DNA of 64,000 nt from Camelus dromedarius (lineage: Eukaryota): NCBI RefSeq assembly GCF_036321535.1, contig NC_087447.1, forward strand, positions 12,648,001 to 12,712,000, given 5' to 3'. Numbering within the stretch: the stretch's first letter is position 1; each line of letters begins with the position of its first letter. Of this stretch, positions 7,850 through 61,182 are shown one piece after another. The notes beneath the pieces were generated by a model that saw nothing but the letters and a program-made list of their open reading frames with translations, made no database searches and had not been told where the DNA came from. Position numbers and translations under genes: made by a program.

Positions 7850-8355
7850 CAACAATACACATTTAAAGAACCAAGTCACATGTCACAATGTGCTCAACTT
7901 CACTGGTGATCAGGAAAATGCAAATTACAACTACAACGCATACCACCCAGCAGAGGGAAAAGAAAAGAAAAAAAAACCCTCATAATATTAAGTATTGTAG
8001 AGACTGTGGAGCAACAGGACTGCTTACATAGTGCGCTCGTGGGAAAGTAAATGATAGAACCAGTTTGTAAAACTTTTCTGTTTGTAAAACTCAGTATCAG
8101 CTTAAGCACAATATATGCATATCCTGCAAACCAGCAACTCTACCCAGAGTTCTACCAAGCAGAAATGGATGAAAGTGGACATACAGAGATATGTGCAAAA
8201 ATGCATTTTGTAATAGCTGCATCTGGGTGCGCTCTAAATAGTTCTCCAAAATAAGAAGAATATATAAATTAAGTACAGTCATACAATGGATACTACACAG
8301 CAGTGGTAATAAAAGAATTACTGCTGTGCTCGTTACCTTCAGCAGCTTGAGTGGA
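7850..8355 (+). mobile_element. Old L1M ORF2 3' end / 3'UTR fragment
   Basis: tgctcaacttcactggtgatcaggaaaatgcaaattacaactaca, gtggagcaacagga, acaatggatactacacagcagt. Confidence 0.75.
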
Positions 8356-8361
8356 AACCAT

Positions 8362-8490
8362 GCTGCAGACTGAATATTTGTGTCCCGCCAACATTCACAT
8401 GCTACAGCTTAACCTCCAGTGTGGCGGTGCTAGATGTGGGGGACTTGGCTAGTGATGATGTCAAAGGCACAGACCTCAGGAATGGGATTA
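8362..8490 (+). mobile_element. MLT1A/B-like LTR 5' fragment
   Basis: tgc...gactgaatatttgtgtccc...acctcaggaatgggattag matches the MLT1 start. Confidence 0.65.
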
Positions 8491-8888
8491 GTTATTTAGT
8501 TATTAGAGTATGCTAGCTAGTCATTCATATATTTACGTGTACTTGTTGATTAGTTTCTATTAGGCACGATTATGGTCATGAGTAGTTATCAATCTCTTCT
8601 ACCTGTCACATTCCATGGGTTTTTCTTCTGGAAATTAACCATCTACAGCTATTACCATTTATTTACATCTCATAGGCATCCCTTCAAAGTGCAAACTCCT
8701 CTACAGGGAGGATGTAATTTTCATATTTGTATTCTAAAGATCAAAAAGCCTTGAACTTTGTGTTAAGTATATTTTTGCTGACAACTTTTAATTTTCAGAT
8801 GACTCATTTCTCTGACCTTAGAGCAACACTTTCAGTGTGTTCCCGCTTTCAGTATGTTCATTATTCTTGTCTTAATAGTTGGTTGTCA

Positions 8889-9050
8889 GGGGGGAGGTAA
8901 TAGCTCAGTGGTAGAGCAGGTGCTCAGTATGCACGAGGTCCTGGGTTCAGTTCCCAGTACCTCCATTAAAACAAACAAACAAACAAAATTACCTCCCCAT
9001 CCCAAAAATATAAATAAATAAATAATTTTAAAAACAAAAAACAAACAAAA
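8889..9050 (+). mobile_element. tRNA-derived SINE (camelid Vic-1-like)
   Basis: A box (tagctcagtggtaga), B box (gggttcagttccc), attacctccccc tail and A-rich end. 15-bp TSD aatagttggttRtcM at 8874-8888 and 9051-9065. Confidence 0.9.
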
Positions 9051-9685
9051 AATAGTTGGTTATCCAATATATACATAGATACCTCTGTCCTCTCTCAGTT
9101 TTGAAGTCTTCTTCACCGTGACCACCAACACATCGCCACCACCACTGTCATCACCGTCAACCACAATAACAAATACAGTCTCTTGTTGGGCTCCAGAAAA
9201 TGAGCTGGACTTGGTGGAAGACATAATGCATCAGTAGATGACTGAACTGGGAAATATGAGATGAAGATTTGATGGAAAACTCACTTTGTCTTTGTGGGAT
9301 TCCATTTGTCAGTGTTCAGAATGAACTTTACCTGTGTTATCATCAATGTCTTTTCTAACCTATGTAACTGTATGTATATATGAAACATGTAGACAGAATT
9401 CTAAGCATTTCCAAATTTAGATTATTATATTTCTTTGACATATAACTTATCTAGATTTTTTAAAAAAAATTTCCCTAAGTATTGAGATACTTAAGTTTTT
9501 AATTTTGTCTTTAGTCCCCAGCTTATTGGCACAGGGTGATTATAAACAACCTGAATGCAGATCATTTGTTGAAAAGCTTTCAGACTTGCTTTATGGTACA
9601 TGTATTGATGTCTAATTATGGAAACACTACTGAGATAGCATAACTAAAATCTTTTGCATATTTTTACAATATTTACCCCAGTACA

Positions 9686-9760
9686 ATTTTTTTCCGTATC
9701 TTTAAAGGAGATACTGGGGGTTGAACCCAGGATAAGCTCTACCACTGAGCTATACCCCTC
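9686..9760 (-). mobile_element. Same SINE family, internally deleted copy
   Basis: Minus strand reads tatagctcagtggtagagc-ttat-cctgggttcaacccccagtatctcc; ~17 bp of the anticodon-arm region is missing. Confidence 0.8.
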
Positions 9761-9862
9761 ACTTCCAGCATGGTACAATTTTTAACCACAGTTTCAGTGA
9801 TTTAAAAAATCTTTTATATCTCTCCTTAGATAATCAACCAATGCCTCACGTATGACAAAGAC

Positions 9863-10253
9863 ATGTTCAGAAGAAACTACACTGAAGTGACAGAATTTCT
9901 TCTCTTGGGTCTGACAAGCCTTTGCGAGTTGCTTTCTTTGTCTTGTTCCTTGCAGTTTACATAGTCATTGTGATAGGAAACCTGGGCGTGATTGTCTTAA
10001 TCAGAACTGATGCTCGACTTCACATGCCCGTGTACGTTTTCCTCTCAAGTTTGTCTGTTTTAGATCTGTGTTTCTCCACAAATGTCACTCCCAAAATCTT
10101 ACAGAATTTCTTATCAGAGAAGACGACTATCTCATATGCAGGCTGTCTGGTGCGGTTCTGTATTGTCATGGCTGTGGTCCTTACAGAACACTGCATGACG
10201 GCTGTCATGGCATACAACTGCTACGTGGCCATCTGCAATCCTCTGCTCTACAG
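9863..10253 (+). pseudogene. 5' half of an OR5M-like olfactory receptor, frameshifted and truncated after TM3
   Basis: MFRRNYTEVTEFLLLGLTS from 9863 and a frameshifting deletion at ~9920, then GN, LHMPVY, STNVTPK and [15 protein letters not shown] (DRY decayed to NCY). OR similarity ends abruptly at ~10253. Candidate acceptor tctccttag ends at 9829. Confidence 0.9.
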
Positions 10254-13173
10254 AAACCCAAGAATCAAGAAAGAGTTAGAATCAGGTTACTTGGCTGGTC
10301 TGAAAAACACATTACCCAAACCTCAAATATTAGATCCAGAAACATACGGGGGTCACAGGCTGAATTACCATGGGGTGAGAGAAGCAGCACCCAGTGGAGG
10401 GATGTGCCCAATAGTCTAAGTACTGGGCACCCCTGTGGTGCTTCCTCTCACATCTAGACCTGTTTCATAGAAGATGCAAGAACGTACTAAGCAGTAGTTC
10501 ATGTATAATGATTATTACTATTTTCTTAATGTTAATAAAATCTAAGCATTAGTTCAGTAAATGAGTCTTCTGCTTAAAAACAATTTTGCCAATAGAAACT
10601 CAGTTTATCAATACTGTGATTGTTATGATTATGAGGAAATGGAGTATGGTCTTCAGGGTTTGTGAGCATTTATTAAAAATGTGTTGACTGATAGGGGGTC
10701 CAAATGGTCTTGCTTCTCAGTTATTATTGTTAAAAAGCTTATTCAGTTAATGTTCGTTAATACTATGTAATTATATATTATATACATAGGACGCAAGGAA
10801 GAGGGGACTCAGAAATAAATAATAAATGTGAAAGCTGAGTTTTTAACATCTGTAACAGTATCTTATCTTTGGAGAAAGGGAGAGACAAAAAGTAAGCTCG
10901 AAGTTTTCAGGCTGTGTTTGCCTGAGAAACAGAGAAATCTATGACCTTAATCCAATTTCTTTGTGTTAGATTTGGGAATAGAGGGTAGACATGACACTTA
11001 TTCCATTAGATTTTTAGAATTCAAGTACAAGGGTGGCCTGTATTCTTTTTTTCTCACTGAACCACAAGCAACAATTCCCCTAAACAATGATTGTCCCATG
11101 TGTCTGGCTGGAGAGGGAGGGTCTCAGTCTCCCAAGGGCTTCTGTGGTCCAGTAGAGTGTGGTAGCTCCAAAGTATTTCCTGTTTCTCAAAGGAACAAAA
11201 AGCACATAAAAGTAAGAAAAATTAAGAGGTTGCAGAGTTCCTAATATGGAGAAAGCATCCAGTAAGAATGGCACTATAAAACTAGAATATAAGGTCCATG
11301 CGAGCAGGTACTAATATTATTTTTTTTCCTGGATTTCAGGCACATAGTAAATAGATAAATAAACAAATAAACAAATAAATGCATGTCACTGTCTAAAGAT
11401 AATGACACCAAGGTTAAGAATGCTGTGTTTTCCAATGCTTTGGGGGTACACTTACCCTCTACACAGGAACAACCCTGTGGAAAGCAGAGTAGGAATTAGT
11501 CAGGTTAACTTTCTTCCACTTTGGAAAATGGAGCCTTAAGATATGAATTAAGCTCAATTAGAGGAATAAAGTTGCACAGCTTACAATATAGAGATCATGA
11601 ACTAAAAATTATACCCATGGCATTTGCAATTATAAGTCAGTAAAAATTAAAATTATATTCCTCAAGTGCATTAATTTATTTTCTCTCCAAAACGGGTAGA
11701 AACTATAGGCATGAGAAGGATAGCTATTGTAGATCATCTTCTATCAATTAAAATAATTTATTAAGACAAGACCGGACGCATTCAGGGTGGTATGGGGAAT
11801 TTTTTTACAGTGTTAAAAAATAGAACAAAATATAAACCACAGCAATAAAAAACTGTCAACCCTAATGCAAGAATTAAGTTGGGTTTTAGAGAAGTCCATT
11901 AATTCTTTCAGACAAGGAAAAGCCCGTCTGAGGCTCATTACATGTGTATATGACATCCTTCTTTATTCTCCCATTGCTTACAATTCTTTCTTACTGAAAA
12001 ATGGGAGCAATGTTCTTCATTAATACAAAGAATTGTGCTAAGTACAGATTATTTGAAATATATGTTGTGGCTGATGCAATATTGACATGATTATTATCAC
12101 ATGGGAAACTAAGAACCACTCCCACCCACAAATGCAGCACAGTCACCAGGATACAGAGAAAACACTGTAAAAAAAAAAGAGGACAAAAAGCAAAATCTCA
12201 AGTTCTTTTAGCCCTTTAATTAATTAACTAATTTAAAAAACTCTAATTCTGCTGAGAGTTATTTTGCTCTTGAGTTTCATTTTCCACTACAGGTGATGCC
12301 ATCTGTAGCATTTTAATTATCTCTGCAGCTTTCTGTCCATATTCTCCAGTGAGAAAGCCCCACAGTGGGAAATCCAGCTCTTATAAATCCGTCTGAATCA
12401 CGCAGTGGTGATATCAGATGAGATGTTTCCAAGAACATTTTTTCTTCATGCACAGGTAGGTTCATGCACAGGTAGAGTCCATGTATTTTCATAAAGTCAG
12501 TCCAGAGTGTGAGCCCTCTAGGTTGCCCTTGTAATTCTCCGTAGGAAGAGAATGCTCTGGAAGGGATATTAGGAGGTGCCGTTAGAAAGGCCTCACTGTG
12601 GCAGTGGTAGTCAGTTGTGGTTGGGGGCTCTGGTTTGATGCCCTTGTCCAAGAACTGCAGTCATTCAGTGGCAAAATTGTACACCATCCTACCCAACAAA
12701 CAATGAGAATTCTCCCCATAAAGGGTCACTACGTGGCAATCAAACCGCTGTGTTTCTGTTTTCTCTGCTAACGACATTTTCTCTTCAGTGCAAGTGCTGG
12801 TCTCAGTCTCTCCCTCTCTTTCTGTCTCTGCTTCTCTCCTTCTCATATACAAACATAAAGTCATGAAATTAAACTTTTATATAGTACTAGCACGTATAAG
12901 ATACCAGTAACGTGTGTTCAAACACAGTTATTGATAAAAAAGCACACTGGACCTCAAAACATTCATAAATGATCCTGTGCTCCTTCCAATCCAGACCATC
13001 TTTTCCTCATTCCACCTCCTACACACTAGTGGTTGGGGTTTCACATGGGGGTAGCCTGAGGAAACATCTTCTCTTGGCATGTGATCTTCTAGCATTCTCT
13101 GCCCTGTTACAGCTAGCTCCCTGACGAAGCCTGTAGGACTCGGGCAGTTGTAAATCATGGGCCCAGCATTTCT

Positions 13174-15410: not shown

Positions 15411-16343
15411 ATGCTCACTTTTACTGATGTGACAGAATTTATTCTCTTGGGACTAACTAGTCGCCCTGAATTACAGCTGCTGTTCTTTGTGGTCTTCTTA
15501 CTGGTCTACATCGTCACCCTGGTTGGGGACGTTGGTGTGATCATACTCATCCGGATCAGTCCCCAGCTCATCAGCCCCATTTATTTTTCCCTCAGTCACT
15601 TGTCTTTTGCAGATGTGTGGTTCTCCTCTAATGTCACTCCCAAAATGTTGGAAAATTTGATATCTGAGACCAAAACCATTTCCTACCCTGGCTGTATAGT
15701 GCAGTGTTTCTTCTTCATTGCCTTCGTCCATGTAGAAGTCTTCATCCTCGCTGTGATGGCCTTTGACAGGTACATGGCAATTGGCAACCCTCTGCTCTAC
15801 GGCAGTAGAGTGTCAAGGATTGTCTGTATTCGACTGATCTCTTTCCCTTATGTATATGGCTTCTTTATAAGTTTCATCTCCACATTGTGGACCCAAGTCT
15901 TGTACTTCTGTGGGAATATTGAGATCAACCACTTCTACTGTGCAGACCCAGCCCTCATCAAGATGGCCTGCACAGGAACCTTCATTAAAGAATACACCAT
16001 GCTCACATTGGCGGGTCTCAACTTCTCTTACTCTTTACTAGTCATTATTATCTCCTACATATTTATCCTTATTGCCATCCTAAGAATGCGCTCAGCAGAA
16101 GGAAGAAAGAAAGCCTTCTCCACATGTGGATCTCATTTGACAGCTGTCACCATATTTTATGGAACTCTCTTCTTCATGTACCTCAGAAGTCCAACTGAAG
16201 AGTCTGTGGAGCAGGGGAAAATGGTAGCTGTGTTTTATACCACGGTGATTCCCATGTTGAATCCCATGATCTACAGCCTCAGGAACAAAGATGTGAAGGA
16301 GACCATGAGCAAAGCGGTCAGTAGGACATACTTAATGAAATAA
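15411..16343 (+). CDS. Intact olfactory receptor ORF, OR5M3-like paralogue, 310 aa
   Basis: Uninterrupted single-exon ORF with [29 protein letters not shown] and [13 protein letters not shown]. Candidate acceptor ttattttattag ends at 15374. Several conserved residues are altered (GN>GD, PMYFF>PIYFS). Confidence 0.93.
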
Positions 16344-23833: not shown

Positions 23834-25894
23834 TCTTGATAATGGCTGTGAGATTGTGTGATATTAAAGCTTCTTTCAGTGTGAACAATTGGTCTGTTCA
23901 GAAATTACTATTTTGAAAATAGCAATTCTATTGTATTTAATCCCTTTCAATGTTTCTGGTGTTTAAGAGACACAGCATGTTTTATAGATTCCACTCACTG
24001 CTGTATTTCAACTCCAAGTTTGCCAGGGATCAGCCTGTGTCCATCTCACGGCTAAAGTGTCTTCTTTCTGACTGAAAAGTGGGTCAAAGTAACAGATGTT
24101 TCATTTTGAAAGCACAGTTTTCACTTAAAAAATTAAATTGATAATCATGCGGAATATTTTATACATTTGTGATTTAGATATGGTACTTAAATACTTTAAA
24201 ATAATTTTTGTATTTGAAAGAAACAAAATACTGAGGATGTCCGTCTGTCATTAACATTGACATGTACTGATATAATATATTAATATAATCTGGTTCTCTC
24301 TTGCACCTCATTTAGGCAAGTATAAGCATGAGGCAACAACCTTACAACTTGAACTTCCATAAAGTTTCTGGGTCCTCTAATAAAAATAAATAAATGAATA
24401 ATAAATAATCTGCTCTTTTGGTGTAGAAAATACGTAACTACTGAAATGTCAATCACACATTTAAATGATGCATTTAAGTAATCGCAAATTGATCTGCAAA
24501 GATGTAAATACAATATGAAATAGGTGCAGTGTGAGGACAAACATTCTTCTTTGGACATTTTTGAGATTTTATTTTCCTTAAGGGAAACCAGTGATGCATA
24601 TGAACTCATTTCCACGTACAAGCACATACATCATGGTCAAAACTTTAAAGCTATTTGCATATAAATAAATTGCTTATTCAGATTAAATTATAATAATATT
24701 ACTTTGCTTAGAGTTGCAAAACTTAAACCCCTACAAGAATTTAAGATTTTATTTACTTACTGTTACTTTTTAGGTGAGTTAAAAGTAATTTCTTTTGGCA
24801 GTGATACCATTAATTCACTATTTATTGGAAAACTCGACATACCAAATTAGTTGCTGATTACTAACAAATTTTAAAATATGGTTTTAAAGCATTTTAATAC
24901 CTGTGAGCAAATGGCCTTGGATGATCTTTGTTACATCTTTTTCTTCAAAAGTGAACTACTTTCTCTGCTTACTTTTCAGAGTGTTGGTTTAGTGTTACAT
25001 GAAGAATGATGACAGCAAGGTAAATGGTTAAATCATGTTCCTGGTATGAGTTTCCAAATTTCAAATAAATTTACGAGTGACCTTGATCTAATCATTTCTT
25101 GTTATTCATCCAGTTAAGTTTTAGGTTCTAGTGTCTGACTCCGAGATCTCTTCTGGCTCATAATTTCCATAAGTTTGGACTCTTGAGCAGAACGTAAAGC
25201 AATTTTGCCATTTGCTGAAAATTCAGAATAGTTTTGTAAAATACTTATAAAAATACACCTTAATGTTACATTCATTTCTACATCTATCAACATCGTTACA
25301 TTTCAGCGTTTCCAACGTAAAGTGTATTTATCTTTCTCTGTCACTCTCTCTATTTTGCTCTCTCCAACACACACACAGACACACACACACACACACATTC
25401 TTCTTTTTAAACCTACATTTACTTGAGAGAGTGCACGTTACATTGTAATAACATGGTGCCAAAGAGTTCACCGGACGCACTGTCTTCATAATGAGTGAGA
25501 AGGAACTTAGAGTTGTGGGTACTCGGGGATAAAGAATGCAGAGGAAAACGTTGCCTGAGCACGATTCTGTCTATTATTTTGCAGATGGAATTGGGGCAGT
25601 ATATAGCTTAGAGTTTATGAACGATCCACATGGGCATTCTGTTTCTTTAACCTGTTAGCTACCTAAACTTGGTAGGAAAACTTAACCTCAGAGTTATTTT
25701 ACATATGCATATTTTTATCCTTCAACATAGCGATGATATTGACCACAGTCCTACAGAAGTGGCGACATCATACTTGTGAACTGTTTATAAGAGAAAATGC
25801 AAAAAGAATTTCAAGACTTTGAGAGCTTCATACGAGACAGACATTGTCCTGAGAGTTAGCCCTAGGTTATCTGAGATCCCTACCCCAGCCTGTG

Positions 25895-26030
25895 GGACAG
25901 TAGTCTCACATTCTGCAGATGAGAATTGAAGCTGAGAATCATTACTCACCCAAGGACACATAATTAAAGTGCAGAGTTAAGAAGGTTTGATTCCTGATCC
26001 TCTGACATCAAATTCAGTGCTCTACTGACT
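25895..26030 (-). mobile_element. MIR core
   Basis: cacattctgcagatgagaattgaagctgaga...cacccaaggacaca. Confidence 0.65.
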
Positions 26031-26394
26031 CCCAGAAGAGCCTCAATTAAGTGAGACAAGTTGTTCTACTATAATCAACCAATGACCTCTACTTTTACTC
26101 ATTCTCCCCAGATGTTTCCAAATGGTCTCTGAGGCACCTGCCATGTGTCTAACATCCATGAGAGGCGTAGGGCATGTATTGCTGTGATGGTCTCTCCTGA
26201 GAGATGATGCTTATTAGAAGTGTAGCACAACAGACATAAAACGACTGACCAAAATTTTATAATGCAAACCAAGAATGTTTTTCCGAGGTGCATAATTGCC
26301 AAGTGTGAATGGAAGGGAGCAGAACCCGTGTGAAGGAGGGAGAGATTAAACCATGATACTAAGAATTTTGATTTCTTAATTTTAGAACCGTAAG

Positions 26395-26583
26395 AATTAG
26401 TCTCCTGATTAGCACTCCTTAACTTCTCTTACCCCTGAGACGTTTCTAGAATTTTAAGTATCGTTTCTTTCATAATTACCTGGGTAGTTCCTTGGGGAGA
26501 GGCTCTCAATCCTCTCAGTGTTTAAGGTTTTATTATAAATAGTGAGTCATTATCATTTGCTTTTCTCACTGCTGAAGGTAGGT
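26395..26583 (+). promoter_or_regulatory. Predicted OR promoter / first exon (OR5M9-like gene)
   Basis: Homeodomain sites (aattag 26395, taatta 26473), O/E-like sites (acccctgaga 26431, tccttgggga 26489), TATAAATA 26534 and donor ag|gtaggt 26578. Motif prediction only. Confidence 0.45.
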
Positions 26584-27384
26584 CTGCAAATTTTACACTC
26601 TTTACAATACAGATTAATGCAGTCACATCTTTTAATTTTTATTCTTGTTTTGCAGAGTAGACTAAGACCTCATTTGTAGACTTATTGGTTATCACAGTGT
26701 TTTATTGTGTGGAAAAATATTACAGGGAAATAGTCTTATTTGTATCCACAGTTTATTTAAAACTTCATATGAATGATCTGGCTACAATGGGGGTTTACAA
26801 AAAATTTATCCTTCATTATTTATCCTTTTACCTCTTCTCTACAATGACCATTGATTTTCACATTGTGTTTTAAAATAAATGTAGATGGAGTTGAAAATTT
26901 TGTGTCAGTGGAAATGATTGAAGCAGTAATTATACCATCACTGTTTCTTTTCATTAGAAATTCCTAAAACATTACTAAAATTCATTTTTAAAACTCATAT
27001 GTTACACATTCTATATTTTTAATTGTTTAATAGATGATGCACACTTATATAATAAATTGGCTCCATCCCAGAAGTCACTTGGCCATCTGGTCCTAGGACC
27101 TCGGGATCGCCTCACCTTGAGTGGTAGCGTGAAGCAGTGGTCCATTTGCTCTGTAGTTCAGCCTGCTCTAGGGTCATGCAAAGCTCTTCTGGTTCATCAA
27201 GAATGAACTATTCAAAGGATAACATTCTTCTTTTTTGGAAGATCCTCGAACTGAAATTTTAAATGTAAAGAAATAGAATACTGGGATAGGTTATCAAAGA
27301 GGCAGAAATATAAGGTTATTAAAGATGCAACACGGAAGTTGAATTAATTGGTTTGCATCTCAGGCTGACCAGTTAGCAGATGTC

Positions 27385-27520
27385 CGATCCAGGGAGACCT
27401 TCTTAGCCTTTCAGTGCTTCAGTTTCCACATTTTTAGATTGACTATGCGAATAGAACCTGGTCCATCGGAACTTTACGTGCAAAGGATTTAGTAAGCATT
27501 CAACAAAAATTAGCTATTCT
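27385..27520 (+). mobile_element. MIR
   Basis: cttagcctttcagtgcttcagtttccacattttta...gtaagcattcaacaaaaattagctatt. Confidence 0.6.
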
Positions 27521-28289
27521 TACTCATATTTTAAAGCTGAGACAGCTGCTAAAACTGTCTTTCCTAGAGGCTTTAATAATATTGGAATACTGTAATGCAT
27601 TACATAAAGCTGATCTAGAGATCAGGACACTTAAAAAAATCTGAAGTGTGAATATCGCTGCGAATCAGTTACATTTAACAACTAAGCCAGGCAGTTTAAA
27701 GAGTTCCAAGATGAATGAGACAAACGCTACTAGCACAGAGCTGGTGATTATGTGTAGAGGAAGAAAACTGCACACATCACGCAGGAAGCAAAACTGAAGC
27801 AGTTTTAGTCTATGTTTCTTAGATGCCTTGATGCTTTTGTTAAATATATTTTATGCTTAGTAGTACCATTAACCCAGTCAGACTCTGTCGGTCAGAGCAT
27901 TATGGGCTCATCGAGCAGGGTCAGGAGTTTTCACACAGGAAAGTCCCCGACCTTAGCTCTGCTTCCTGACCAGAGTCTGCATCTCTCATCTGGCTGAGTA
28001 TTTCCACACTTAAGAGAAGCCAGATGATCTACAATCATGGAAATCTACAGTAAGGGGGAAGCCAGATCAGAAAATGAAGCTTCAGTGTCTCCTATCTTAT
28101 GTGCCCAATTTACTTTATACATGGTGTACTTCATTCCCATGTGAATAATGAGAGATGGGAAAATAGTTCATAGAGACTAATGAACTTCCTTAATGTCCTC
28201 TGCTATGGATTGGAGGGGACCGTGATATAATCATGGAATTTACACACTGTTTAATGTCAAAGGAATGGCTCTAGAAACACTCTTTTTCT

Positions 28290-28620
28290 ACATGGCAAGC
28301 TAAGAGTCCCTTTTGCATTTTCATTCTCTTCTTTCCCATATTTCTACATGGCTGGTTTCTTCTCACTAAGTAAAGAGTCATATTTTCAAAGAGATCTTCT
28401 ATCACCCTGTCTGCATCCTGCCTCTCCTTGTTTCTGATCTCATTGGCAAACTGTGTGTTTGTCACTGCAGCTCCAGTCCCTGAAGTATCTCACTTGTATA
28501 TTTATCATTTACTTCTTTTCAGCAAGAATAAATTATGATGCAGGCCAGAATCCTGTATATCTTGTTTAACCTCCTATTTCCAGAATTTACAATACTTCTA
28601 GATATAACAAATATATCTGA
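28290..28620 (+). mobile_element. L2 3' region
   Basis: ttttcaaagagatcttctatcaccct...gcaggccagaatcctgtatatcttgtt. Confidence 0.55.
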
Positions 28621-29889
28621 CATATAACTAGCTTTGATGTTTATAAAATGAATTAATCTAAGCAATTACAAGCAAAGGCCCATTTATATGTCAGTAACAT
28701 CCCCTTCAAACACTATTAATATGGAGAGCTTAAATTCCCAAGATGATGATAATTATACAGATGCAGCCTTAAGAACTCACAGCAAATTTTTATTTCTTGG
28801 AGAAGTCAACAGGGGAAATGTATTAAAAGGAGAAAAGATTTCTTGGGAACATGTCCCTTGTGGTGACATTAAATTTGCATATAAATAGGCATAGAATTGA
28901 TTGTTCCTGAAAACCGGTTTAATCTGAAATGAGAGACAATAATTATTAAAACGTGTCACCTCAATTTTACCTCATGGTATTTGTCTAGGTAGTTATCTAT
29001 AGACATAATTCTGATATTGGGTGCTACGTGGTTTAAACACCTGTGGTTTACGTTTTTTTTTTTTAAGATAAAAGCTATTAGAGACTGTGCTTTTAAATAC
29101 CTCTCACCTTACCCTGCTAGTGGCAGTCATCAAGCAAGTATCATGTAAGGCTAAACAAACTAAAATGTGACTAGGAATTTCATTATGTCGAAAGCACGTG
29201 GTATCATGTACTTGCATAACGTAGGACTAACACGTCAATAACTAGGTTATAAGACCAGCGTATAAGACCACTGTCCCATAAAATTATATAAATAAGAGGT
29301 TACTGTCCAAAGCATGTGAAAATAGGTAAGTTAATATCACACGTGTATTTGTATTTTTATTGACATTGAGAGCCAACTATCATACTGGAAAATGGCATTC
29401 AGTGGAGTTTCAGAGGATTCAATGTACTTACTTCCCTGTGAGTACTAAGTGGCTAGCTGACCTTGCGTGAACATTTAACACTGATGAGTCTCAAGCTTTT
29501 TTCTAAAAAACAATATATTCGAATGGATTTAGTCATTCTCTGACAACTCTCAGTCTGGCTTTAGTCTTATCTGAGCCCTGGGATGTTAACATTATGGTAA
29601 TAATTTACCAAATATAAATATATATTTCTGGTAATATGTGAATGCAATTGTCTATTTTAGGACTAAGAAACTGATATAAATATTGATGGTCATTACCTAT
29701 AAGACCTACTAAAGGAAATAATTGTGCTTACATATTCTTTTATTGGACACTGTGTGAAACATACATTAATTTTTTCAATTATTTGAATTAGAATACAGAT
29801 ACACATGACACAAGACTTTCAAGAATAAAACAAATCCATTGTTTTTTTTTTCTCCCACAGATGATACAGACTGGGTCTCCATGAAGGCA

Positions 29890-30826
29890 ATGCCAAATTT
29901 CACAGAGTTGACAGAGTTTATTCTTCTGGGGTTGACCAGTCGTCAGGAGCTTCAAGTTCTCCTTTTTGGGGTGTTCCTAGTGGTTTACATGATCACTCTG
30001 TTAGGGAACATCGGTATGAGTATTTTGATCAGCATCAGTCCCCAGCTTCAGACCCCTATGAAGTGTCTTTTTCTTGAGTCACCTGTCTTTTGTGGATGTG
30101 TGGTTCTCTTCCAATGTCACTCCCAAAATGCTGGAAAACTTATTATCAGAGACAAAAACCATCTCTTACGTGGGGTGTCTGGTGCAGTGTTACTTTTTAA
30201 TCGCCCTTGTCCACGTGGAGGTCTGTATCTTGGCTGTGATGGCCTTTGATTGCTACATGGCCATCTGCAACCCTCTGCTTTATGGCAGTAAAATGTCCAG
30301 GACTGTCTGTATTCAGCTCATCTCTGTGCCTTATGTCTACGGATTCTCTATTAGCCTAATATGCACCCCGTGGACATATGGCTTGTACTTCTGTGGAAAT
30401 TTTGAAATTAACCACTTCTATTGTGCTGACCCTCCTCTCATCAAGATTGCCTGTGGGGGGATACACATCAAAGAATACACCATGATAGTTACTGCTGGGA
30501 TTAACTTCACATACTCCCTCTCAGTGGTCTTCATGTCCTATACCCTCATTGTAATAGCCGTGCTACGCATGCGCTCTGCTGACGGGAGGAGGAAGGCGTT
30601 CTCCACCTGCGGGTCCCACTTGATGGCTGTTACCATGTTTTATGGGACTCTCATATTCATGTATCTCAGGAGGCCCACTGAAGAGTCTGTGGAGCAGGGG
30701 AAAATGGTAGCTGTGTTTTAAACCACAGTGATTCCCATGCTGAATCCCATGATCTACAGTTCGAGAAACAAAGATGTGAAAGAGGCAGTCAACAAAGCAA
30801 TCATCAAAGCAAACTTGGGGCAGTGA
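29890..30826 (+). pseudogene. OR5M9: Olfactory receptor pseudogene, OR5M9 orthologue
   Basis: [16 protein letters not shown] from 29890. Net +4 insertion at ~30060-30073 in the PMYFF motif; DRY>DCY; TAC/TAT>TAA nonsense at 30719-30721; old stop TGA at 30824-30826. 937-4=933 nt gives 310 aa. Strong acceptor (t)n-ctcccacag ends at 29860. Confidence 0.92.
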
Positions 30827-31924
30827 AACTGCAATAGATATTTCTGAGTATGTTGCTACTTGTGATGTGTCCTGGCATGAAAGTTCCTAGCTCGATACAG
30901 ACTGTCTAAAGGCAACTCTTACATATACTAAGAGCTCCAGTCTAACCCAGTGATGCTTTTACCCCATGCATGACCTCTAAATACTAAGATTGTTATTCTG
31001 CATATGCAACTATATTATTCAAACTGACATATTACACATTCAAAGTGTATTCAAAATTGTGTTGTCATTGGACGACTCATAAATAAGTTGAGATAAATAC
31101 ATGGTGTTTTGGAGATATCTTTGTTAGAGTTGAACATGATTTCTATGATATTTTCTTTACTCAGATTTCATAAGAAATATATAATTTCATGAGGAAAAGA
31201 ATAGGAATTCATCTCTCTTCCCTGATTACAGAATGCTGATGGACCCTGATTTACCAAATAACTTTTTGATAATGTTCATACACACATGGACTTTTGATAA
31301 CAAAATTGCATTGAGAATCTTCAACTAGTGTTGTAACACAGTCCTAAGTTTTGTTCTCAGTATGTATAGCTTGATAATTATCAACACTTTTTGTGTGTCA
31401 AACAATCTGTTTACTTACCCTGATTCTACTCCTTAGCATGGATTCTGGTTAGTTTTCTTGGTTTTAAAGGGTGAAATATTTATGACATAAGACTTTCCTG
31501 TCTTCATCATAATAAAAAAAAATGAACCAATATGAGCTTTCTGATATTTAAAAATCTAACCTTTGGTCATAGCCTTCATCCTATTAAACCTTTGGTTGAT
31601 ATGACTTGAAACTATTGTTTGGTTCTAATTTCTTCTCATGAATGTTACATTCTTTGGTTCTGTTTTAGCAGCTTAAATCAAGCTTCCAGGGCTTAGAGCG
31701 GATCAACCAGATAAGAAGCCCTGTTCAACTAAAAGCCATTGCATTGGGTATGCATTAAAATATGGTCGATACAGCTCAAAATGATATCCATCAGGGCCCA
31801 GTTAAAAGTTCTCAAAATCTCACTGTTCCATTTATCTAGATTGGTACCCACTTAATCTACATTCATTCTTGCTACAAGAATACAGACTTTTCTGTATTAA
31901 TGACTCTCATCAGCATAAAGGTGA

Positions 31925-31972
31925 ATGGGAAGTAGAAGTAATTTCTGATGATTGAGTTTATTCTTGGGACTA
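31925..31972 (+). pseudogene. Probable ~50-bp 5' stub of a deleted OR gene
   Basis: atgggaagtagaagtaatttc...att gag ttt att c ttg gga cta aligns with the N-F-x...TEFILLGL start of neighbouring ORs (compare 29895-29935). Candidate acceptor cag at 31911-31913. Short and contains indels. Confidence 0.55.
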
Positions 31973-32579
31973 AAGAAGCCCTGTTTACTTACCCTGATTC
32001 TACGCAGGGCTAATTGAATTAAAAGGAGTGCACAATGGAAAATGTGCAGGAGGACTCTGAGAAGTAACATATGGTGGTGGTAACACCACTGGGAGGATGG
32101 ACTAATTCAAGCACAGAAAGTATGGCTGCTCAGGCTAACTTGCTAATTAACCGTAAGCCACGTTCCTTCTAATTGGATCAGAGAAAAGGTAGCTGGTGGG
32201 AGGAGGGCTGTTATTTTTCATAAATTTAGGTTCTGAGCAGGAAGAAAAAGTACCATTAATTGCTATTGGAAATTATATTAACAAAGTGGATTTCTTTTTT
32301 ATGTTGTCAAACCACCCAAATCTGGTTCTAAAGAGTTCATGTCAATGTAGTGTCAAAGTAGGACTACTCGAGACACTTTAGCTTTCACAGAGATTGGCAT
32401 TACAGCCTGACAGTCTAAGACCATATTTCTTCTGATCCCTATGGCAGAAATATTCCTCAAGGGCCACTATTTTATTTTTTTCTTTTAGAAGTAAAACACT
32501 AGCCCTCCAGCTGTTAGCCACAGTTGCCCTCATTTCTATTAGCCAGGTAGCTAACGTTGTTACAAATGTTTTGGCAATG

Positions 32580-32840
32580 AGCTGTCAGTAGAAAGATATG
32601 TCTAAAACCCAAGATCATTTCCTCAAGTCAAAGCCACTAGAGCTGGACTTGTTCCTTTCTCTTCCTTCTTGAAAATGTTGCCACTGAAATGGTTGCTGTA
32701 GACTGAGACAAGAAAGCCACATGTGGAGGGTCTAATTGCCTAACCCAAACCCCATAACTCACACTGTCCCCTGAGAGAGGAATCTAATCCTATCTCACTA
32801 AGTCACTGCATTTTGGGAGTTTGCTCCTTACAGAGCGTGG
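32580..32840 (+). mobile_element. Old MLT1-like LTR 3' part
   Basis: Ends with ctaagtcactgcattttgggagtttgctccttacagagc, resembling a MaLR LTR terminus. Confidence 0.4.
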
Positions 32841-34439
32841 CTGAAATTGTTCTTATAATTCTTTCCAGGAACATGGTCCTTAGCACCTGGCTTCTGCATC
32901 TGACCACTTCCCAGGGCAAATGTTGCCTTGAGGATGAATGTCTCCTCAGAAAATGTCTATTCTGACACTGAGTATACTGGGTAAAGAAGGGTACCTGGTT
33001 CTCTGTCTTACCAGAAGGAGGGAAAACTCAACCTCCAGTCTTAGATGTTAGGTTTATCCCCCTTTCCTAACTACTTGATGAGCCTTTGGACTTGTCATGA
33101 CCTCCAGCTGTCACATTTAGTTGGTTTCGAATCCCTTTGGCCCCAACTTATAGGTGGCTTCTCCTCACTAGTCTTTGCAGATACTTACAAGGCTCTGTCA
33201 CAGGCTCAGGGAATCTCAGCCACTTCCTCTGTGCTGTGTTTGTAGGTGTGGACCGGGTGAGTTTCCACCAGACGTTTTAGACAACACATCTTTAGTTCTT
33301 CTTACTTAGCATGAGTTGAATTGTGTCCTGATAAAATGAATATATTCCTTCACCAATTTGCTGCAACGTTGGGACTCTGGTTTTTCTATTAGGCTTTTTG
33401 TTTCAGTAAACCAGGCTCTACCTCGGGGAGGTAAGCTATCATTCTTGCTGCCCCGGGAGCTCTTCAAACCCCTCTGAGCTTTCTTTCTGAAACTGTGTGA
33501 TTTTGCAGCAACCTCACCTGAATCCACTGTGATACCCAGAGGAAGGGGCAGCAGATTCCTCTCCAAAGAGTCACTAACCTTTACATCTCACTCGCATCGC
33601 CAGGCTCAGGTTGGGCCCTTACTGCTTGTTTCCAGGAAAACGGCTCCTCTATCGTTAGGAGATCTTTTCTACTTTCCAGTTTTCTGTATAAACTCCATGA
33701 TGGTCTCTTCGCTGTTTAATACTAAGCTTTGGGGATTACAGAACAAGCAAAATAAACATAGCAACAACAAAGGTGTTTTCCTTATTTGAGTTTTTGCCCT
33801 TGACAGTCATGACTTCCAAGATTCATATTTTGGTTTGATGCCTCTGCCCCCCAAAGAAACTAATCTAGAGCCTGAAAGGCATAGTTGTAATTCTGCCTTT
33901 CTTCAGAATCTGTACCGTTTGCATCCACTTAGAACACCTCATTGTTGATTTAGTGATAGAGTTGGTGTTGGTTAGGGAGGATGTAAAAATAATTTTTAAG
34001 ATACATAATTTAATATGACAATATTGATGTCTTCACATAAATCTAAATTCTAAATTTAACCATGAACACTGTCCTAACATAACTTGGAATAGCAAACTAA
34101 AGTGGTTATCATGGGCTTCTGATTAACTTCTATAATTTCTCTTGCCAGTATTTCCCAAAATACAGCACAAGAGATAATTTCACATAGTACCCAGAGATTG
34201 TGTTATTTTAACTTTTTGAGTGTTTGGAATTCTTGTTACTTTATGATGATTTTGGCATGGATTTTTCTCCTTTGCAGTGGTTACAGAAAGTTTAGTTTTC
34301 AGATTTATTTAAATAAGCTTGTGAGTCAATTAAAATATATTAAGCAAATAATAAATGTGTTGGGCCAATGCATGAAAAATAACAAAACATAATATTAACT
34401 AAAAGTCAGAAAATGCAACCCTATGGCAAGTCACTACAA

Positions 34440-34610
34440 TCACACACACACAGAGACACACACACACTATCATATATATATAGATAGATAGGTAGATAGA
34501 TAGATAAACACATAGACAGATAGATAGATAGACAGACCTAGTTACTCTATACATAGTATATAGTACAATATGTGTATACTATATATACTGTAGTATATAT
34601 GTATATGCTT
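34440..34610 (+). repeat. Compound (CA)n/(GATA)n/(TA)n microsatellite
   Basis: Read directly from the sequence. Confidence 0.9.
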
Positions 34611-34812
34611 AACTCAGCAGCTTCTCGGGGTACTAGCTTTGTATCAGACACTACTTCCCGTGGGGTTTTTAAACCACCCCATCTTTAATTTTTTCAGAGC
34701 TCCATAGTTTCTGCAATTTCCAAGACTATTAAGTCATTCAAGCGGCACAAAATCTGGTAAGTCATTTGTGAAAGTCTCTGTTGTCGTGCTGTTTTTTATG
34801 TTAATTTTAGTC

Positions 34813-34816
<4 letters not shown>

Positions 34817-34848
<32 letters not shown>

Positions 34849-34882
34849 TATATGTATATATATATATGTGTATATATATATA
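34817..34882 (+). repeat. Interrupted (TA)n microsatellite
   Basis: Read directly from the sequence. Confidence 0.95.
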
Positions 34883-35383
34883 TCAAAGAGAATTGAAGGG
34901 AAATCAGGGAAATCTATCGGAGGGACACCAATGGGTTTCCCATGTTGTTCAATTAACTGTGACTCTAGGACAGAATCAGCTTTGAACGCCTGAGCTTTAT
35001 AAGCACCCCTCACTCAGAACTTAATATTGTTCAGGCAACTGTTTCCCATCACTGACAGGTGGTTTTGAGGAGCCTGGTTAATGAAAATCATAGATGCTAT
35101 TCAGCATCACCTAGCTGGAAGTGGTAATACTCAGGTTTCAACACAAAAGCACAATTCCAAGAATGAGTTTTTTTGTTTTTTTTTTTTTTTTTTCTAATTT
35201 ACTGAGATGCCATAGCTTGAACACAGGCAGATTTTGATTCCTGGTCATGCCTGGTTTAGAATCATGAGCCTTTCATGAGATGAAAGCAGGACTGACAGAG
35301 AAAATGAAAAAAGAAATCAGCTCATGGTAGTGGAGGGCTCACACGTGATCCTAGCACATACATCATTGGCATAGCTTCACCTC

Positions 35384-35468
35384 GTTCATTTGATAATGAA
35401 CTTCATTTGTTCATTGCTTGTTCACTTTGTTCATTGTTTATTGTTCACAACTGCATTATCAAATGAAC
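35384..35468. repeat. Foldback: perfect 15-bp inverted repeat around a ttgttca array
   Basis: gttcatttgataatg (35384-98) and cattatcaaatgaac (35454-68); the 55-nt spacer holds 4 exact and 1 variant ttgttca. Confidence 0.9.
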
Positions 35469-36850
35469 AAAATTATTTCCTGGTTTGCTAGATTCATTCT
35501 AACACCTATCACAGTACGTAGGTCATGGTGGCACAATATTATAATTCAGCAGGCTGACTTATTTCGAATCCATTCACTTTCTAGTTGTCTTATTCTTAGA
35601 GGAGGTCATTGAAAGGATGTTTCTGCTAAGTGACTCACAAGATAAACCCTGGCCATTTGGTGGCTCCTTACTCACTCCCTTCTCCTTTGAATGTATGTTC
35701 TGCCCACTGTTCCCAAAGTAAGAGGATGCAGATGTTGTTGAGACCATCTGGATGGTATGTGAAAATGAATCAAGTTAAAGCTTCTTTATACACGTTGAAG
35801 ATTCTGGCAGACAAATGTAGAGATCTACATCCAAGGCAAGCCTCATATGTAAGTTCTTTTCCTTATCAAACCTGCCACCAACGAATCTAAACTGGTCTGT
35901 TGCTAGCTGCCTCTTCTCCCAGAGTCTCCAACACTGTCAGGCAGGAAATATTTTGTTTGTTTGTTTGTTTTTTGCTCTCCAAGAATGACTCACAAAATCA
36001 TGCACATGGTAGACATGAACATTTGAATTTATGCTTGAAACAATAATCTATTACATTCCAGTTGAAGGTTTAAGCGGGTTTTGGATTATGTCTCTTTATA
36101 GTACCTGAACATAAACTATATTCTTGACATGTAATAGCCACCATATTTATCTCTTGGTTTTAAGCTACCCCTTCCTGTCCCCCAACCCACTGTAATTTCC
36201 TCATACCCCTAAATCCTTAAAAGACCTTTAGAAAGCACAGCTTTGCTTAGGGAACTTAGGGATAGCTCTGCATTTTTGTTTTGATAGAATAATAAAAGGG
36301 AATATGGTTTTCCAAAAGCTAATCCTGGTTCCCAGATCTACATGGTGAAAAATGACTTTCTTTCAAAGGATGTGCTAATCATGCAATTTCAGGGAGTGGA
36401 CAGTAGTGAATCCAGGGGTCAGAAGCAGAGAGAGGAATGATGGGTCACAGACAGGGAACATTGGAGGAGGAGGCTATCACATGGAATGACATAAAGATGG
36501 ATAAGAAACTTACTTCATCACCATCCTTGCCCCTTTCTCTGTCTTCCATGATATACAAAACAGGAACAATTTTTAAAAGACTGATTAAACCTTATTATCA
36601 GTTGAATAGAAGCTAGTCAGGTCAAAGTTATCAGTGTCACATACCCTAAGAGTAGCAATTTGTTAAAAATGTAAATTCTATTCATTTAAAAATTTCCTCT
36701 TACTATCAATTACATGAAAACTAGAACTCATGTACAAAATCATTTTACTCATATAAAGAACAGTAAAAATAAAATGTACTTCATCAAAAGATTAGAAAAA
36801 CAACATGTCTATCTGCAAGTGGCATTGTTCCAAGTCAGGCTTTGTTCAAG

Positions 36851-37807
36851 TCACTTTTTAAAGTTTATTAGAGGCAGGACATAGCATTTGTCAATGGCTT
36901 TCCTCAAGGCATTCTTTACTTCTTGGTTCCTCAAGCTGTAGATCATGGGGTTGAGCATAGGAATGACTATTGTGTAGAACACAGAGGCCATTTTGTCCGT
37001 GTCAAGGGAATGGTTTGATTTGGGCTGCAGATACGTGAAGATCAGAGTCCCATAGAATATAGTCACAGTGGTCAGATGAGAGCCACAAGTCGAGAATGCT
37101 TTGCACCTCCCTTCTGTCGACTGGATTCTCAGGATGGCAGCCACAATGTATAAGTAAGAAATAAGGATGGTGGTCAAAGAGCTGATCAAGTTGAGTCCAG
37201 CAAAGATGAAAATCAAGATCTCCTTGAGGCTGGTGTCTGAGCAGGCAAGGGCCATCAAAGGGACATCATCACAGTAGAAATGATTGATGACATTGGGGCC
37301 ACAGTAGATCAGTTGGAAAGTAACAACTGTGTGGAGCAAAGCAACAGAAAAGCTGTATAAGACAGGGCCCGTTACCAGCTGCAGACACACCTTTGGGGAC
37401 ATGACCACCACGTAGAGAAGAGGATTGCAGATGGCAACATAGCGGTCATAAGCCATTACTGAAAGAAGGAACATCTCCAAGATCAAGAAGTTCAGGAAAA
37501 AGCCCAGCTGTGTGGCACATGCATAGAAAGATATGGACCTGTGTCTGGTCAGGAGGGTCTGCAGGAGCTTGGGGGCTATTGATGAAGAGTAGCAAAGGTC
37601 TACAAAGGCCAGAGTACTGAGAAAAAAGTACATGGGCGTGTGAAGTCGAGAATCCAGTCGGATTAGTGAAATCATCCCAAGGTTTCCTACCAGAGTTAGA
37701 GAATATACCACTAAAACGAGCAGGAAGAGAATGAGTTCAATCCCTCTGCGGACTGAAAAGCCCAAAAGAATGAATTCCGTCACCCTGGTGCTGTTCCTTT
37801 CAGTCAT
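36851..37807 (-). CDS. Intact olfactory receptor, OR8U subfamily-like, 318 aa
   Basis: The true start is probably ATG 37807 ([17 protein letters not shown]), preceded by acceptor tgtctttcttcag/cag at ~37828. All canonical motifs are present: [43 protein letters not shown]. Shares [19 protein letters not shown] with the 54625 gene. Confidence 0.94.
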
Positions 37808-38769
37808 TTGTTCCAATCTCTCAACTGCTGAAGAAAGACAAGTTAAAGACTGAAAAATTACCGGGCATAAGAAATTGTCACCAGGCATCAACTCTTGTGT
37901 GTTTCAGCTTCAGAAATTATTGTTCATTGTGGTAGAATATCAGAACAAACACATCCCATTTCAAACTCTCCTCTCTGGCTGTTTATAATTTTATGAGGTC
38001 AAAAGTCGAGTTCTCATAAAGATAAACCAATTAAAGTCTGCAGAGTAAAGGTGAAAAGATGAACAAAATGGTGTATGTTTGAAAAGATATTTAATATTTT
38101 AGATTCAGACCATTTTCAATTATATTGAATAAAGAGAAGAAACCATTTTTTTTATTTCCTGCTCCCGTATCTTCTTCTTGGTAGAGCAGAACCTTAATGT
38201 AGTAATTTATTGCCTCTTTGAGTAGATATTTTTATTTGTTTTTTAAAGTATAGTTATCTAAATTAAAGTGTTGTGCCATGTTGCATTTTAACTATTTATG
38301 ACATTTATAATCAAGAATGTTTTCTACAATTTCTGTTAAATTTTCAGTGATTATAACTGCATTCCTCCTTTTAAAAGGTGGTAATCTCTTTGAAAACGAG
38401 AGAAATAGAAAATGTGAGGAAGTGAGATTCCTGCCTTATGCTGTTCCTCTTGGACGATGTGTCATTGTGAATTCGATGCCCCTTTCAACTTCTAAAGGAA
38501 GATAAATAGCTAACTTTAATTTCAAGAGGAATGTAATAAAATAAAAAAAATTATCATCCTTATCAAATTAAAAAAGTGTACAAAGTAGAAAAAATAATTC
38601 CTGTTTTCTCCTCAAACATTTTGTCCAAAGGGAAACTTTTTTTTCTAACAGTTTAGTGAGAGTGGTCAGAAAATTATTCCTTTAAATTTTTTTCTTCTCT
38701 CTCTATTGAATCATCTTAATACTATTACTTGTACCTAATGTGCTCTCTAAAAACAAGAAACAAAAAATA

Positions 38770-38880
38770 TATATGCATACATACACAAACATGCACATAC
38801 ATATATACACAAACACACACATATACATACAGATATGTGCATATATACACACATACGCAGTTACATATAAGTGCATATAT
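38770..38880 (+). repeat. Degenerate (CA/TA)n low-complexity tract
   Basis: Read directly from the sequence; similar tracts lie at ~7225-7258, ~17455-17560 and ~25365-25398. Confidence 0.85.
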
Positions 38881-39639
38881 AAAACCTGACATGAAAACAG
38901 AATTTCCCTCTATCCGTTTATTTTCCACTTAGCGAAGTCGAAACCCACCGTGTGAGAGGTGTTGAACTGGCTTGTCTTCCTGAACTGGCATCCTAACACA
39001 GCTACGGTGCTATAGCTCACTATTCTGGGAATAGAATAGAAGAAGAAATGAGAAAACACTGATTTGGCTGCCATGTGCTCACTACCATCCATGGCAACAT
39101 GACTCTGGTCCCACTCTCGGTCTTCCACGATAAGTATCCTTTCAGATGTTTTAGGGGTAATTAGTGGAAGTGTTGGTACTGAGTTACTTTTCTTTGTGCA
39201 TACATTGGAATTAGGCTTATTTTTTTATTTTTCTTCTTTTTAATTAAATAACTTTCAAAACCCGGACACGCTCATCAATTTCAAATTGACCCATGAATTT
39301 CTCTGATAGATGTTTCTTAAACCTCAGCATTCCCCCCTGAGAGAAAGACAACTCCCACACACACAAAGGTTCTTCATCAGAGGATTTGACTTCTGATTGT
39401 TTATCAACAGATAAAACGTGTTTTCTTCTTCTAAAGGACACCCAAGTCTCAGGCAGCAGTTGAAGAAGATATTTCATTTGGGGAGGGTTAAGAAAGGTGT
39501 TTCGTTCTTGAGAAGAGACATCAGCTTCATCTAGTTGGAGCTGAACTAGCCAGGGCCATCTCCTTTGTTTTAAATTGGGGAAAATTGTGGATGACTTGGA
39601 AATAAGGCGCTATGTAATGACCAACAGCAGTACTTGTTA

Positions 39640-39845
39640 ACCTACCAGCATGTGGAAGAAATCTTCCCCCGAATATTTCCCCAGGGGTCTCCTTTCCAAG
39701 GACTCTCTCAGACAGTCGAGATATGTGAACCAGTGCTCCAGGCCTTTATATAATGCAGTCTCGATTCTGTTGAGAGTTAATTCCCAGTGTTCCCCCAATG
39801 TGAGCGCACCAGAGTGCAACTGTGCACCCTCCAGGGTGCAACCTG
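39640..39845 (-). promoter_or_regulatory. Predicted promoter / first exon of the OR8U-like gene
   Basis: Minus-strand TATATAAA at ~39745-52, donor tg|gtaggt at 39645, O/E site tccccagggg at 39678-87 and ttaattccc at ~39778. Motif prediction only. Confidence 0.45.
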
Positions 39846-40561
39846 ATAAGAAAGTTCCAATCAGATGAAGATTAGCTGATAAAAACAAAGGTAACTTTAA
39901 GTTATGTTTGAAACTAGAATAATGTCAGCATGAAATCACTAGTCCTTGGTTACGTATGTCCAGTTCAACTGCTATAAACAAAACAAAGAAAAGCAAAACC
40001 AAATGGCAAACAATTTAAATATTACAACTACTTTTAATGTATTCATCATTTGTTTTCATTTGTCCCTTCCATTCCCTGTGATCTTCTCAGCCAAAGGGAT
40101 TCTGATTCAATTATTTGTTCTATATTTACTGAGTGTGTTTTATACCTTGAAGTTGTAAGTTATCCAGCAATCTGTTTGTTTACTTTTATAATATGTAATC
40201 AATAAATACCTGATATCTACATCCTAGAGAGTAAACATTTAACTCTTTATAATCACCTGGCATTGATTTGTTGTATGACCTAGGCAAGAATTAAGCTATC
40301 ATATGTACAAATAGCTAACTAATTGCCCTGATGTTATTAATTGAATAATCCACCTCTTTCTTATTAATTTACAGTTAATGGACTTTAAACATATCGCCTC
40401 ATTTACTAAAATAATTCAATAAAATCAACCAGTTTCTGTATATATTAAAAAAAACAACCTTGGAGTATTAGTATTGATAGGTATGGGGCATTTTTATATA
40501 TCCTTTATTTTGTTAAAAAAATATATATATACATACATTTTTCTAGGATGAAAAGAAAGTA

Positions 40562-60078: not shown

Positions 60079-61182
60079 GGCAATGGAAATAAAAGCGAAA
60101 ATAAACCAGTGGGACCTAATTAAACTTATAAGCTTTTGCACAGCAAAAAAAAACCATAAGCAAAAAGAAAAGACAATATTTGCAAAGAATGTGACTGACA
60201 AGGGCTAACTTCCAGAATGTAAAAACAGCTCATACAACAACAATAAAACAAACAACCCAATCAGAAAATGGGCAGAAGGCCTAAACAGACATTTCTGCAA
60301 TGAAGACATACAGATGGCTAATAGGCCTGTGAAAAGATGCTCAATATCTTTAATTATCAGAGAAATGCAAAACAAAACTATAATAAGGTATCACCTCACA
60401 TCTGTCAGAATGGCCATCATTACAGTGTCCGCAAATGATAAATGTTGGAGAGACTGTGGACACTGTTGGTGGGAATGTAGATTGGTGCAGCCACTATGGA
60501 AAACAGTATGGAGATTTCTTAAAAAACTAAAAATAGACTTACAGTATGATCCAGCAATCCCATCCCTGGGCATATATCCGGAGAAAATTCAAATTCAAAG
60601 GTATATTTGCACCCCAGTGTTCATAGCAGCATTATTTACAAGGGNNNNNNNNNNNNNNNNNNNNNNNNNNNNNNNNNNNNNNNNNNNNNNNNNNNNNNNN
60701 NNNNNNNNNNNNNNNNNNNNNNNNNNNNNNNNNNNNNNNNNNNNNNNNNNNNNNNNNNNNNNNNNNNNNNNNNNNNNNNNNTGGACCTAGAGATTATCAT
60801 ATTAAATGAAGTAAGTCAGAGAAAGACAAATACCATATGATACAACTTACATGTGGAATCTTAAAAAATGAGGCAAATGAACTTATTTACAAAACAGAGA
60901 CAGACTCATAGACATATAGAAAACAAACTTGCAGTTATGGGGAAGGGAAGGAGAGTGAGGAGATAAATTAGGAGTTTGGGGTTAGAAGATACTAACTACT
61001 ATGTATAAAACAGATAAAACAAAGTCCTACTGTATAGCACAGGGAAATATTCAAAATCTTGTAATAAACTATGATGGAAAAGAATCTGAAAAGTAACATA
61101 TATATATATGACTGAATCCCTATGGTGCACAACAGAAATTAACACAGTATTGTAAATCAACTACACTTCATTTAAAAAAAAA
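60079..61182 (+). mobile_element. L1 ORF2 C-terminus and 3'UTR (lineage-specific, 5'-truncated)
   Basis: ORF 60314 translates as L1 ORF2 ([34 protein letters not shown]). The 3'UTR ends caactacacttcattt(a)n. Contains the N gap. Confidence 0.95.
60645..60781. other. Assembly gap (137 N)
   Basis: Run of n inside the L1. Confidence 1.

Follow-up and report, generated by a model that had tools for sequence, protein, structure and literature searches.

The stretch of DNA under consideration, hereafter the window, spans 64,000 nucleotides of the genome of the dromedary Camelus dromedarius (G000:C12:12648001-12712000) and corresponds to an olfactory receptor (OR) cluster, in which genes and pseudogenes of the OR5M type lie on the + strand at about 4057, 9900, 15411, 23452 and 29890-30826. 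Between the last of these and an intact OR on the opposite strand, a short OR-like relic adjoins a patch copied from two sequences located upstream. The features referred to in the following are, in order of position:

29890-30826, + strand: OR5M9 ortholog, a pseudogene, with a tblastn frame break at 30060-30068 and best protein matches named OR5M9; left anchor
31407-31429, + strand: template 1, from which the 23-nt portion of the patch derives; its copy (23/23 match) lies 574 bp downstream
31713-31725, + strand: template 2, from which the 13-nt portion of the patch derives; its copy (13/13 match) lies 260 bp downstream
31925-31966, + strand: OR-like 5' stub, i.e., an ATG and about 40 nt resembling the N-terminal coding end of ORs up to the EFIL motif, aligning with small indels to the OR 5' ends of the window
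31967-32005, + strand: camelid-specific segment of 39 nt, delimited by multiple alignments in which four camelid copies were set against deer, buffalo, horse, bat and elephant
31973-32003, + strand: two-template mosaic of 31 nt, with exact matches to templates 1 and 2
32004-32005, + strand: 2 nt that separate the mosaic from the native right flank, without template match
32006-32100, + strand: native right flank, which aligns in every outgroup, elephant included, and directly adjoins the stub in non-camelids except elephant
36851-37807, - strand: OR8U3/OR1038, an intact open reading frame 100% identical to Camelus olfactory receptor 1038; right anchor

A protein named OR5M9 of Camelus dromedarius is 87% identical to the OR5M9 pseudogene of the window, and a functional copy of this gene appears to reside in a paralogous block on another contig (C15). 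Further downstream in the window, an L1 ORF2-like frame at 60314-60790 is broken by the only N run present (60645-60781).

The patch is composed of two copies in direct orientation, namely positions 31981-32003, which repeat template 1, and positions 31973-31985, which repeat template 2. Within the mosaic, 31973-31980 match template 2 alone and 31986-32003 template 1 alone, and the five nucleotides in between, CTGTT at 31981-31985, are common to both templates and constitute the microhomology at the switch. When up to three mismatches are tolerated, the 23-mer is found at two sites in the window for an expectation of zero, and the 13-mer, with at most one mismatch, likewise at two sites for an expectation of 0.21. 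Among 20,000 random 39-mers drawn with the local first-order composition and matched to the flanks within 1 kb on either side, the longest flank match never exceeded 15 nt, and a match of at least 13 nt had a probability of 0.003. Both repeats lie exactly where the initial annotation had placed them, and its reading of the 31 bp as a mosaic of two nearby upstream sequences, with a 23-bp match beyond the reach of chance, is borne out by these figures.

Within the camelid-specific segment, the mosaic is preceded by 6 nt (31967-31972) and followed by 2 nt, and neither stretch has a convincing template. Position 32004 is moreover variable, i.e., G in the window (C12), A in both paralogous copies of the dromedary (C35 and C15) and C in alpaca. 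Two candidates for a third template of 31967-31972 were considered, namely ACTAAA at 31728-31733, adjoining template 2, and GGACTAA at 32099-32105, about 130 bp downstream; with about 6% and about 15% expected by chance, respectively, they do no better than chance and were rejected. The sole other occurrence of the camelid string TTGGGACTAA (31964-31973), which includes these 6 nt, is in the OR at 15447, 16.5 kb off, and this string is nearer the OR 5' consensus than that of any outgroup; parsimony on length says that the OR-consensus-like state at 31967-31972 is derived.

The patch is present in paralogous copies and in independent data. The 851-bp region containing both templates and the patch occurs in exactly three copies in the dromedary genome, carried by paralogous blocks of at least 30 kb on three contigs (window 18300-53900, G000:C35:9020000-9049999 and G000:C15:1480000-1509999), and a patch-free paralog that could serve as ancestral proxy was not found by the whole-genome searches, which returned these three copies, all with the patch. 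A blastn search of 30701-33500 against the window matched only the coding tail of the neighbouring OR. In alpaca, an independent assembly (L022) is collinear with window 24096-40111 at 91.3% identity and has the patch as well. The mosaic is identical in C12, C35 and alpaca; the C15 copy departs from it by one change, and in alpaca a single change affects template 1. Sequencing runs of three Camelus organisms yielded unitigs that span 31838-32003 and 31974-32150, and these display neither differences nor indels nor any alternative joint. An assembly artefact, the eventuality under which the initial annotation would have withdrawn its account, was rejected on the grounds that two paralogous copies, the alpaca assembly and the unitigs all display the patch. 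In the same alpaca block, the counterpart of OR8U3 is split into two tblastn pieces, which suggests that it is probably a pseudogene.

To establish the state of the site outside camelids, orthologs of the two flanking ORs were retrieved by protein search and their genomic surroundings were then fetched. Fallow deer (L018, L019) is collinear from 17172 to 13400 with window 29514-33308 at 74% identity, Przewalski horse (L020) from 19859 to 16505 with window 29889-33253 at 70%, and Asian elephant (L026) from 8219 to 12625 with window 28133-32594 at 69.5%; the bat Hipposideros (L023) is collinear with the window from 31059 to 33329, and buffalo (L024) spans window 31826-33308. Two further OR8U3-anchored loci, from hippo (L017) and elephant (L025), stop short of the site and lie outside the comparison. 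In brown bear (L021:15176-15900), the equivalent of 31454-31682 is inverted, 31683-34228 have no match and the wider interval 31450-34229 is rearranged or missing, i.e., a lineage-specific rearrangement has removed the site.

Both upstream templates, or their aligned context, are present in deer, buffalo, horse, bat and elephant. Template 1 occupies the orthologous place in horse with 3 differences and in deer with 7, template 2 is likewise in place in both species in a diverged form, and overall the templates carry 2-7 substitutions in horse and deer; with the templates found at their orthologous upstream places, the sources are ancestral. At the insertion site itself, deer, buffalo, horse and bat share an equal short length, 35 nt less than camelids, and have no patch. 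The ruminant site reads GAGTTTATTCTTGTTTAAGGGCTAAT, so that the 39 nt of camelids (31967-32005) stand against TTTA in ruminants, a net gain of 35 nt. The patch is also absent from elephant, which at the same TTAA has an insertion of its own of about 60 nt (L026:11950-12060, equivalent to window 31966-32010); this insertion has the look of an AfroSINE fragment in reverse orientation, truncated at its 5' end and with its tail next to the TTAA. The ruminant GTTT/AAGG at the site, with the slash marking the break, resembles an L1 endonuclease nick site, and it might be speculated that the camelid break began as an L1-endonuclease-like nick. The initial annotation had anticipated that outgroups would have single copies of both templates and no mosaic, and this is what the comparison reveals, i.e., ancestral sources and a derived patch. 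Found in all four camelid sequences (dromedary C12, C35 and C15, and alpaca) and absent from the outgroups, the patch is derived, a templated insertion that arose on the camelid stem. Its occurrence in the three dromedary paralogs and in alpaca agrees with the germline fixation proposed at the outset.

The age of the insertion relative to duplication and speciation can be read from the camelid copies. A maximum likelihood tree of 30900-33250 and its orthologs recovered the topology (C12,(alpaca,(C35,C15))), every node of which had 100% support, and the length of the camelid stem was 0.12 substitutions per site. C35 and C15 share 98.7% identity, against 92.3-92.7% for C12 compared with either of them; the C35/C15 pair is either very recent or possibly an assembly duplication. 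Since alpaca groups with C35 and C15, the older segmental duplication predates the camel/alpaca split, and the presence of the patch in all copies, combined with this topology, places the insertion before that duplication, on the camelid stem. As reconstructed for the camelid ancestor, templates and copies agree at 36/36 nt, which points to the later part of the stem, with an estimated divergence d below about 0.04 before the duplication at the 95% level.

The relic next to the patch has another history. The initial annotation had reported an OR-like stub there, which proves real: compared with OR 5' ends, the stub scored better than dinucleotide shuffles with P of about 0.001 in camel, 0.003 in deer, 0.008 in bat and below 0.001 in elephant, and with P of 0.17 in horse, so that the similarity appears genuine but modest and recurs across species. 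Deer, buffalo, horse, bat and elephant all carry the stub, which measures about 45 nt and has the orientation of the OR neighbours in the cluster. The OR5M9-OR8U3 blocks of the outgroups are collinear and their lengths match that of camel. As all outgroups share the stub with the same right flank and no OR there, the stub is older than the placental radiation.

From the juxtaposition of stub and patch, the initial annotation had deduced that the mosaic was filler sealing the near-total deletion of an OR gene, insertion and gene loss being one event. In keeping with this, the patch lies within 1-7 nt of the end of the OR-like similarity, and no OR coding similarity follows it (the best tblastn match for OR remains after the camel patch had an E value of 6.5). 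Such a deletion nonetheless requires that relatives without the patch retain the gene, i.e., the full OR5M-type open reading frame expected at the equivalent of 31925 in cattle and horse, and this was not found in deer, buffalo, horse, bat or elephant. On the contrary, these five outgroups, from four orders, are collinear and have the stub with the same right flank and without the patch; in deer, buffalo, horse, bat and alpaca, tblastn detected no OR in the interval bounded by the orthologs of OR5M9 and OR8U3, nor any downstream of the OR5M9-like gene of elephant, in blocks as long as that of camel. A full-length OR ortholog at the stub was found in none of the five outgroups reached. It is consequently highly improbable that insertion and gene loss coincided, and the idea that the insertion event erased a receptor gene should be abandoned. 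Any OR loss here predates the divergence of placental orders, and the insertion came much later, on the camelid stem. A repair scar beside a gene relic does not imply a shared origin for the two, which here lie tens of millions of years apart.

Other explanations for the patch concern its unity, its polarity or its very nature as a templated insertion. The ruminant TGTTTA at the site is also the centre of the mosaic, and the change can be written as insertions of 17 and 18 nt around a retained hexamer; hence the proposition of two separate templated insertions at a native TGTTTA at different times on the stem, with the part from template 1 placed on the right and the part from template 2 on the left. 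This would require no substitution and would give each insertion 4-6 nt of microhomology with a hexamer that ruminants do have, but it demands two rare events at one hexamer whose ancestral state is uncertain, bat reading TATGTA and horse another string. With both parts in all four camelid copies, and no intermediate kept in living camelids, such a two-step origin is unlikely. The resemblance of camelid TTGGGACTAA to the OR 5' consensus, closer than in the outgroups, could alternatively mean that camelids kept an older state and that the patch is ancestral and was separately lost in ruminants, horse, bat and elephant. This would demand three or more independent deletions that shared their boundaries and ended in one and the same length in deer, buffalo, horse and bat, and the 36/36 identity between templates and copies is incompatible with an age greater than that of the placental radiation, which leaves an ancestral patch barely credible. 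Finally, direct repeats of 23 nt that bound a discrete interval recall the target-site duplication of a 551-bp element, or the remnant of a 574-bp tandem duplication later deleted. The interval in question (31430-31980) is, however, present and collinear in every outgroup, has neither poly-A nor terminal repeats, and occurs in three genome copies that all belong to the same paralogous blocks; as both models also leave the 13-nt match unexplained, an origin of this kind is exceedingly improbable.

The mosaic is very probably a mutation scar, left by one complex templated insertion in the germline of stem camelids at an old, pre-existing junction and not tied to the loss of a receptor. The junction, between the OR-like relic of about 45 nt and an unrelated flank, was already in place before placental orders split. 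At this site, a 3' DNA end would leave its template, and the strand would take 18-23 nt from template 1 (31407-31429) and 8-13 nt from template 2 (31713-31725), with a change of template at the shared CTGTT, before synthesis returned to the original site with a net gain of 35 nt. The order of copying would be set by the strand synthesised: (i) a rightward-growing strand would copy template 2 first and template 1 next, and (ii) a leftward-growing strand would move ahead to template 1, pair its AACAG end with the CTGTT of template 2 and then go home. The latter path would equally describe a resected right-hand break end copying the single-stranded left-hand tail. The 5-nt overlap at the junction between template 2 and template 1 is the expected leftover of a microhomology-primed switch, and the outer junctions have 0-2 nt of microhomology, or 4-6 nt when the native TGTTTA is counted.

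Serial template switching, by FoSTeS/MMBIR or polymerase-theta joining, was the mechanism put forward by the initial annotation; the mosaic of two templates and the 5-nt microhomology speak in favour of it. MMBIR/FoSTeS-like switching and polymerase-theta joining are inseparable from sequence alone. The distances of 260 and 574 bp and the tract of 18-23 nt fit better with MMBIR-like complex insertions, and we lean slightly towards replicative or break-induced template switching of this type (MMBIR/FoSTeS-like). Polymerase-theta end joining, in which one resected end would be copied from the other, would come second, as a serious candidate of lesser probability, and some other enzymology would be rather improbable.

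Several known systems offer points of comparison. In FoSTeS and short template switches, the nascent strand switches serially among nearby templates and then goes back, and classical short template-switch events are mostly inverted and replace sequence in place. The camelid patch has in common with FoSTeS the serial switch and the return to the original template, whereas it differs from classical short template-switch events in that its copies are both direct and add length. Complex multi-template germline insertions with microhomology junctions have been described in humans (PMC8421209), and the camelid patch resembles the 'complex' class of these MMB-TI by its size of a few tens of nt, its two or more nearby templates, the 5 nt of microhomology where its two tracts join, its germline nature and its location outside genes. 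Unlike the human MMB-TI polymorphisms (PMC8421209), it is fixed in a whole family and polarised by outgroups; also in contrast to MMB-TI, both of its templates are direct and on the same side, and its outer junctions are poor in microhomology.

As for polymerase-theta, its templated insertions (TINS) comprise tracts of 3-30 bp that match flanking DNA exactly and may result from several rounds, and are typically local, with primary tracts rarely exceeding 10 nt (PMC7165422); direct-repeat insertions templated from the opposite resected end are also on record (PMC7165422; PMC4490562). The camelid tracts of 8-13 and 18-23 nt, identical to flanking DNA, are of this sort (PMC7165422; PMC4490562), as are the multiple rounds of synthesis, the direct orientation, which fits one resected end copying the other, and the loss of at most 4 nt at the site. 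In contrast to typical TINS, the camelid patch has its templates at distances of 260 and 574 bp and includes a tract of at least 18 nt. Taken against these systems, the camelid patch is a clean, well-polarised case of an already described type of mutation. It adds nothing new on OR gene counts or repair enzymology; its interest resides in being a multi-template germline insertion with both sources known, polarity given by five outgroups and age bracketed by duplication and speciation, and such cases help to calibrate genome-wide scans for template switches. The patch is also a rare genomic character marking camelids.

Nothing indicates a function for the patch, and its later recruitment, as a camelid-specific exon boundary or a selected regulatory piece, would be very unlikely. 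On the + strand, 31986-32006 comprise a pyrimidine-rich tract followed by CAG/G, which resembles a splice acceptor, and the variable position 32004 corresponds to the degenerate N of the acceptor-like NCAG. On the - strand, 31414-31423 and 31988-31997 both read CAGGGTAAGT, a consensus-like 5' splice site (CAGG/GTAAGT) that was duplicated by the insertion. No RNA record figures among the listed holders of 31700-32300, which is no proof of silence. In the 10.7-kb alignment of the four camelid copies, the 110-nt interval encompassing stub and patch (31902-32011) is the least variable, with 2 variable events for a mean of 11, an outcome of about 1 in 10 once the number of intervals is allowed for. 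The low variation near stub and patch could reflect constraint on a regulatory patch, or simply a mutation rate that is low in this region. Further intervals of low variation among the four camelid copies cluster at 31.1-32.8 kb (31172-32770), and motifs of the right flank, e.g., around 32015-32070, are conserved out to elephant.
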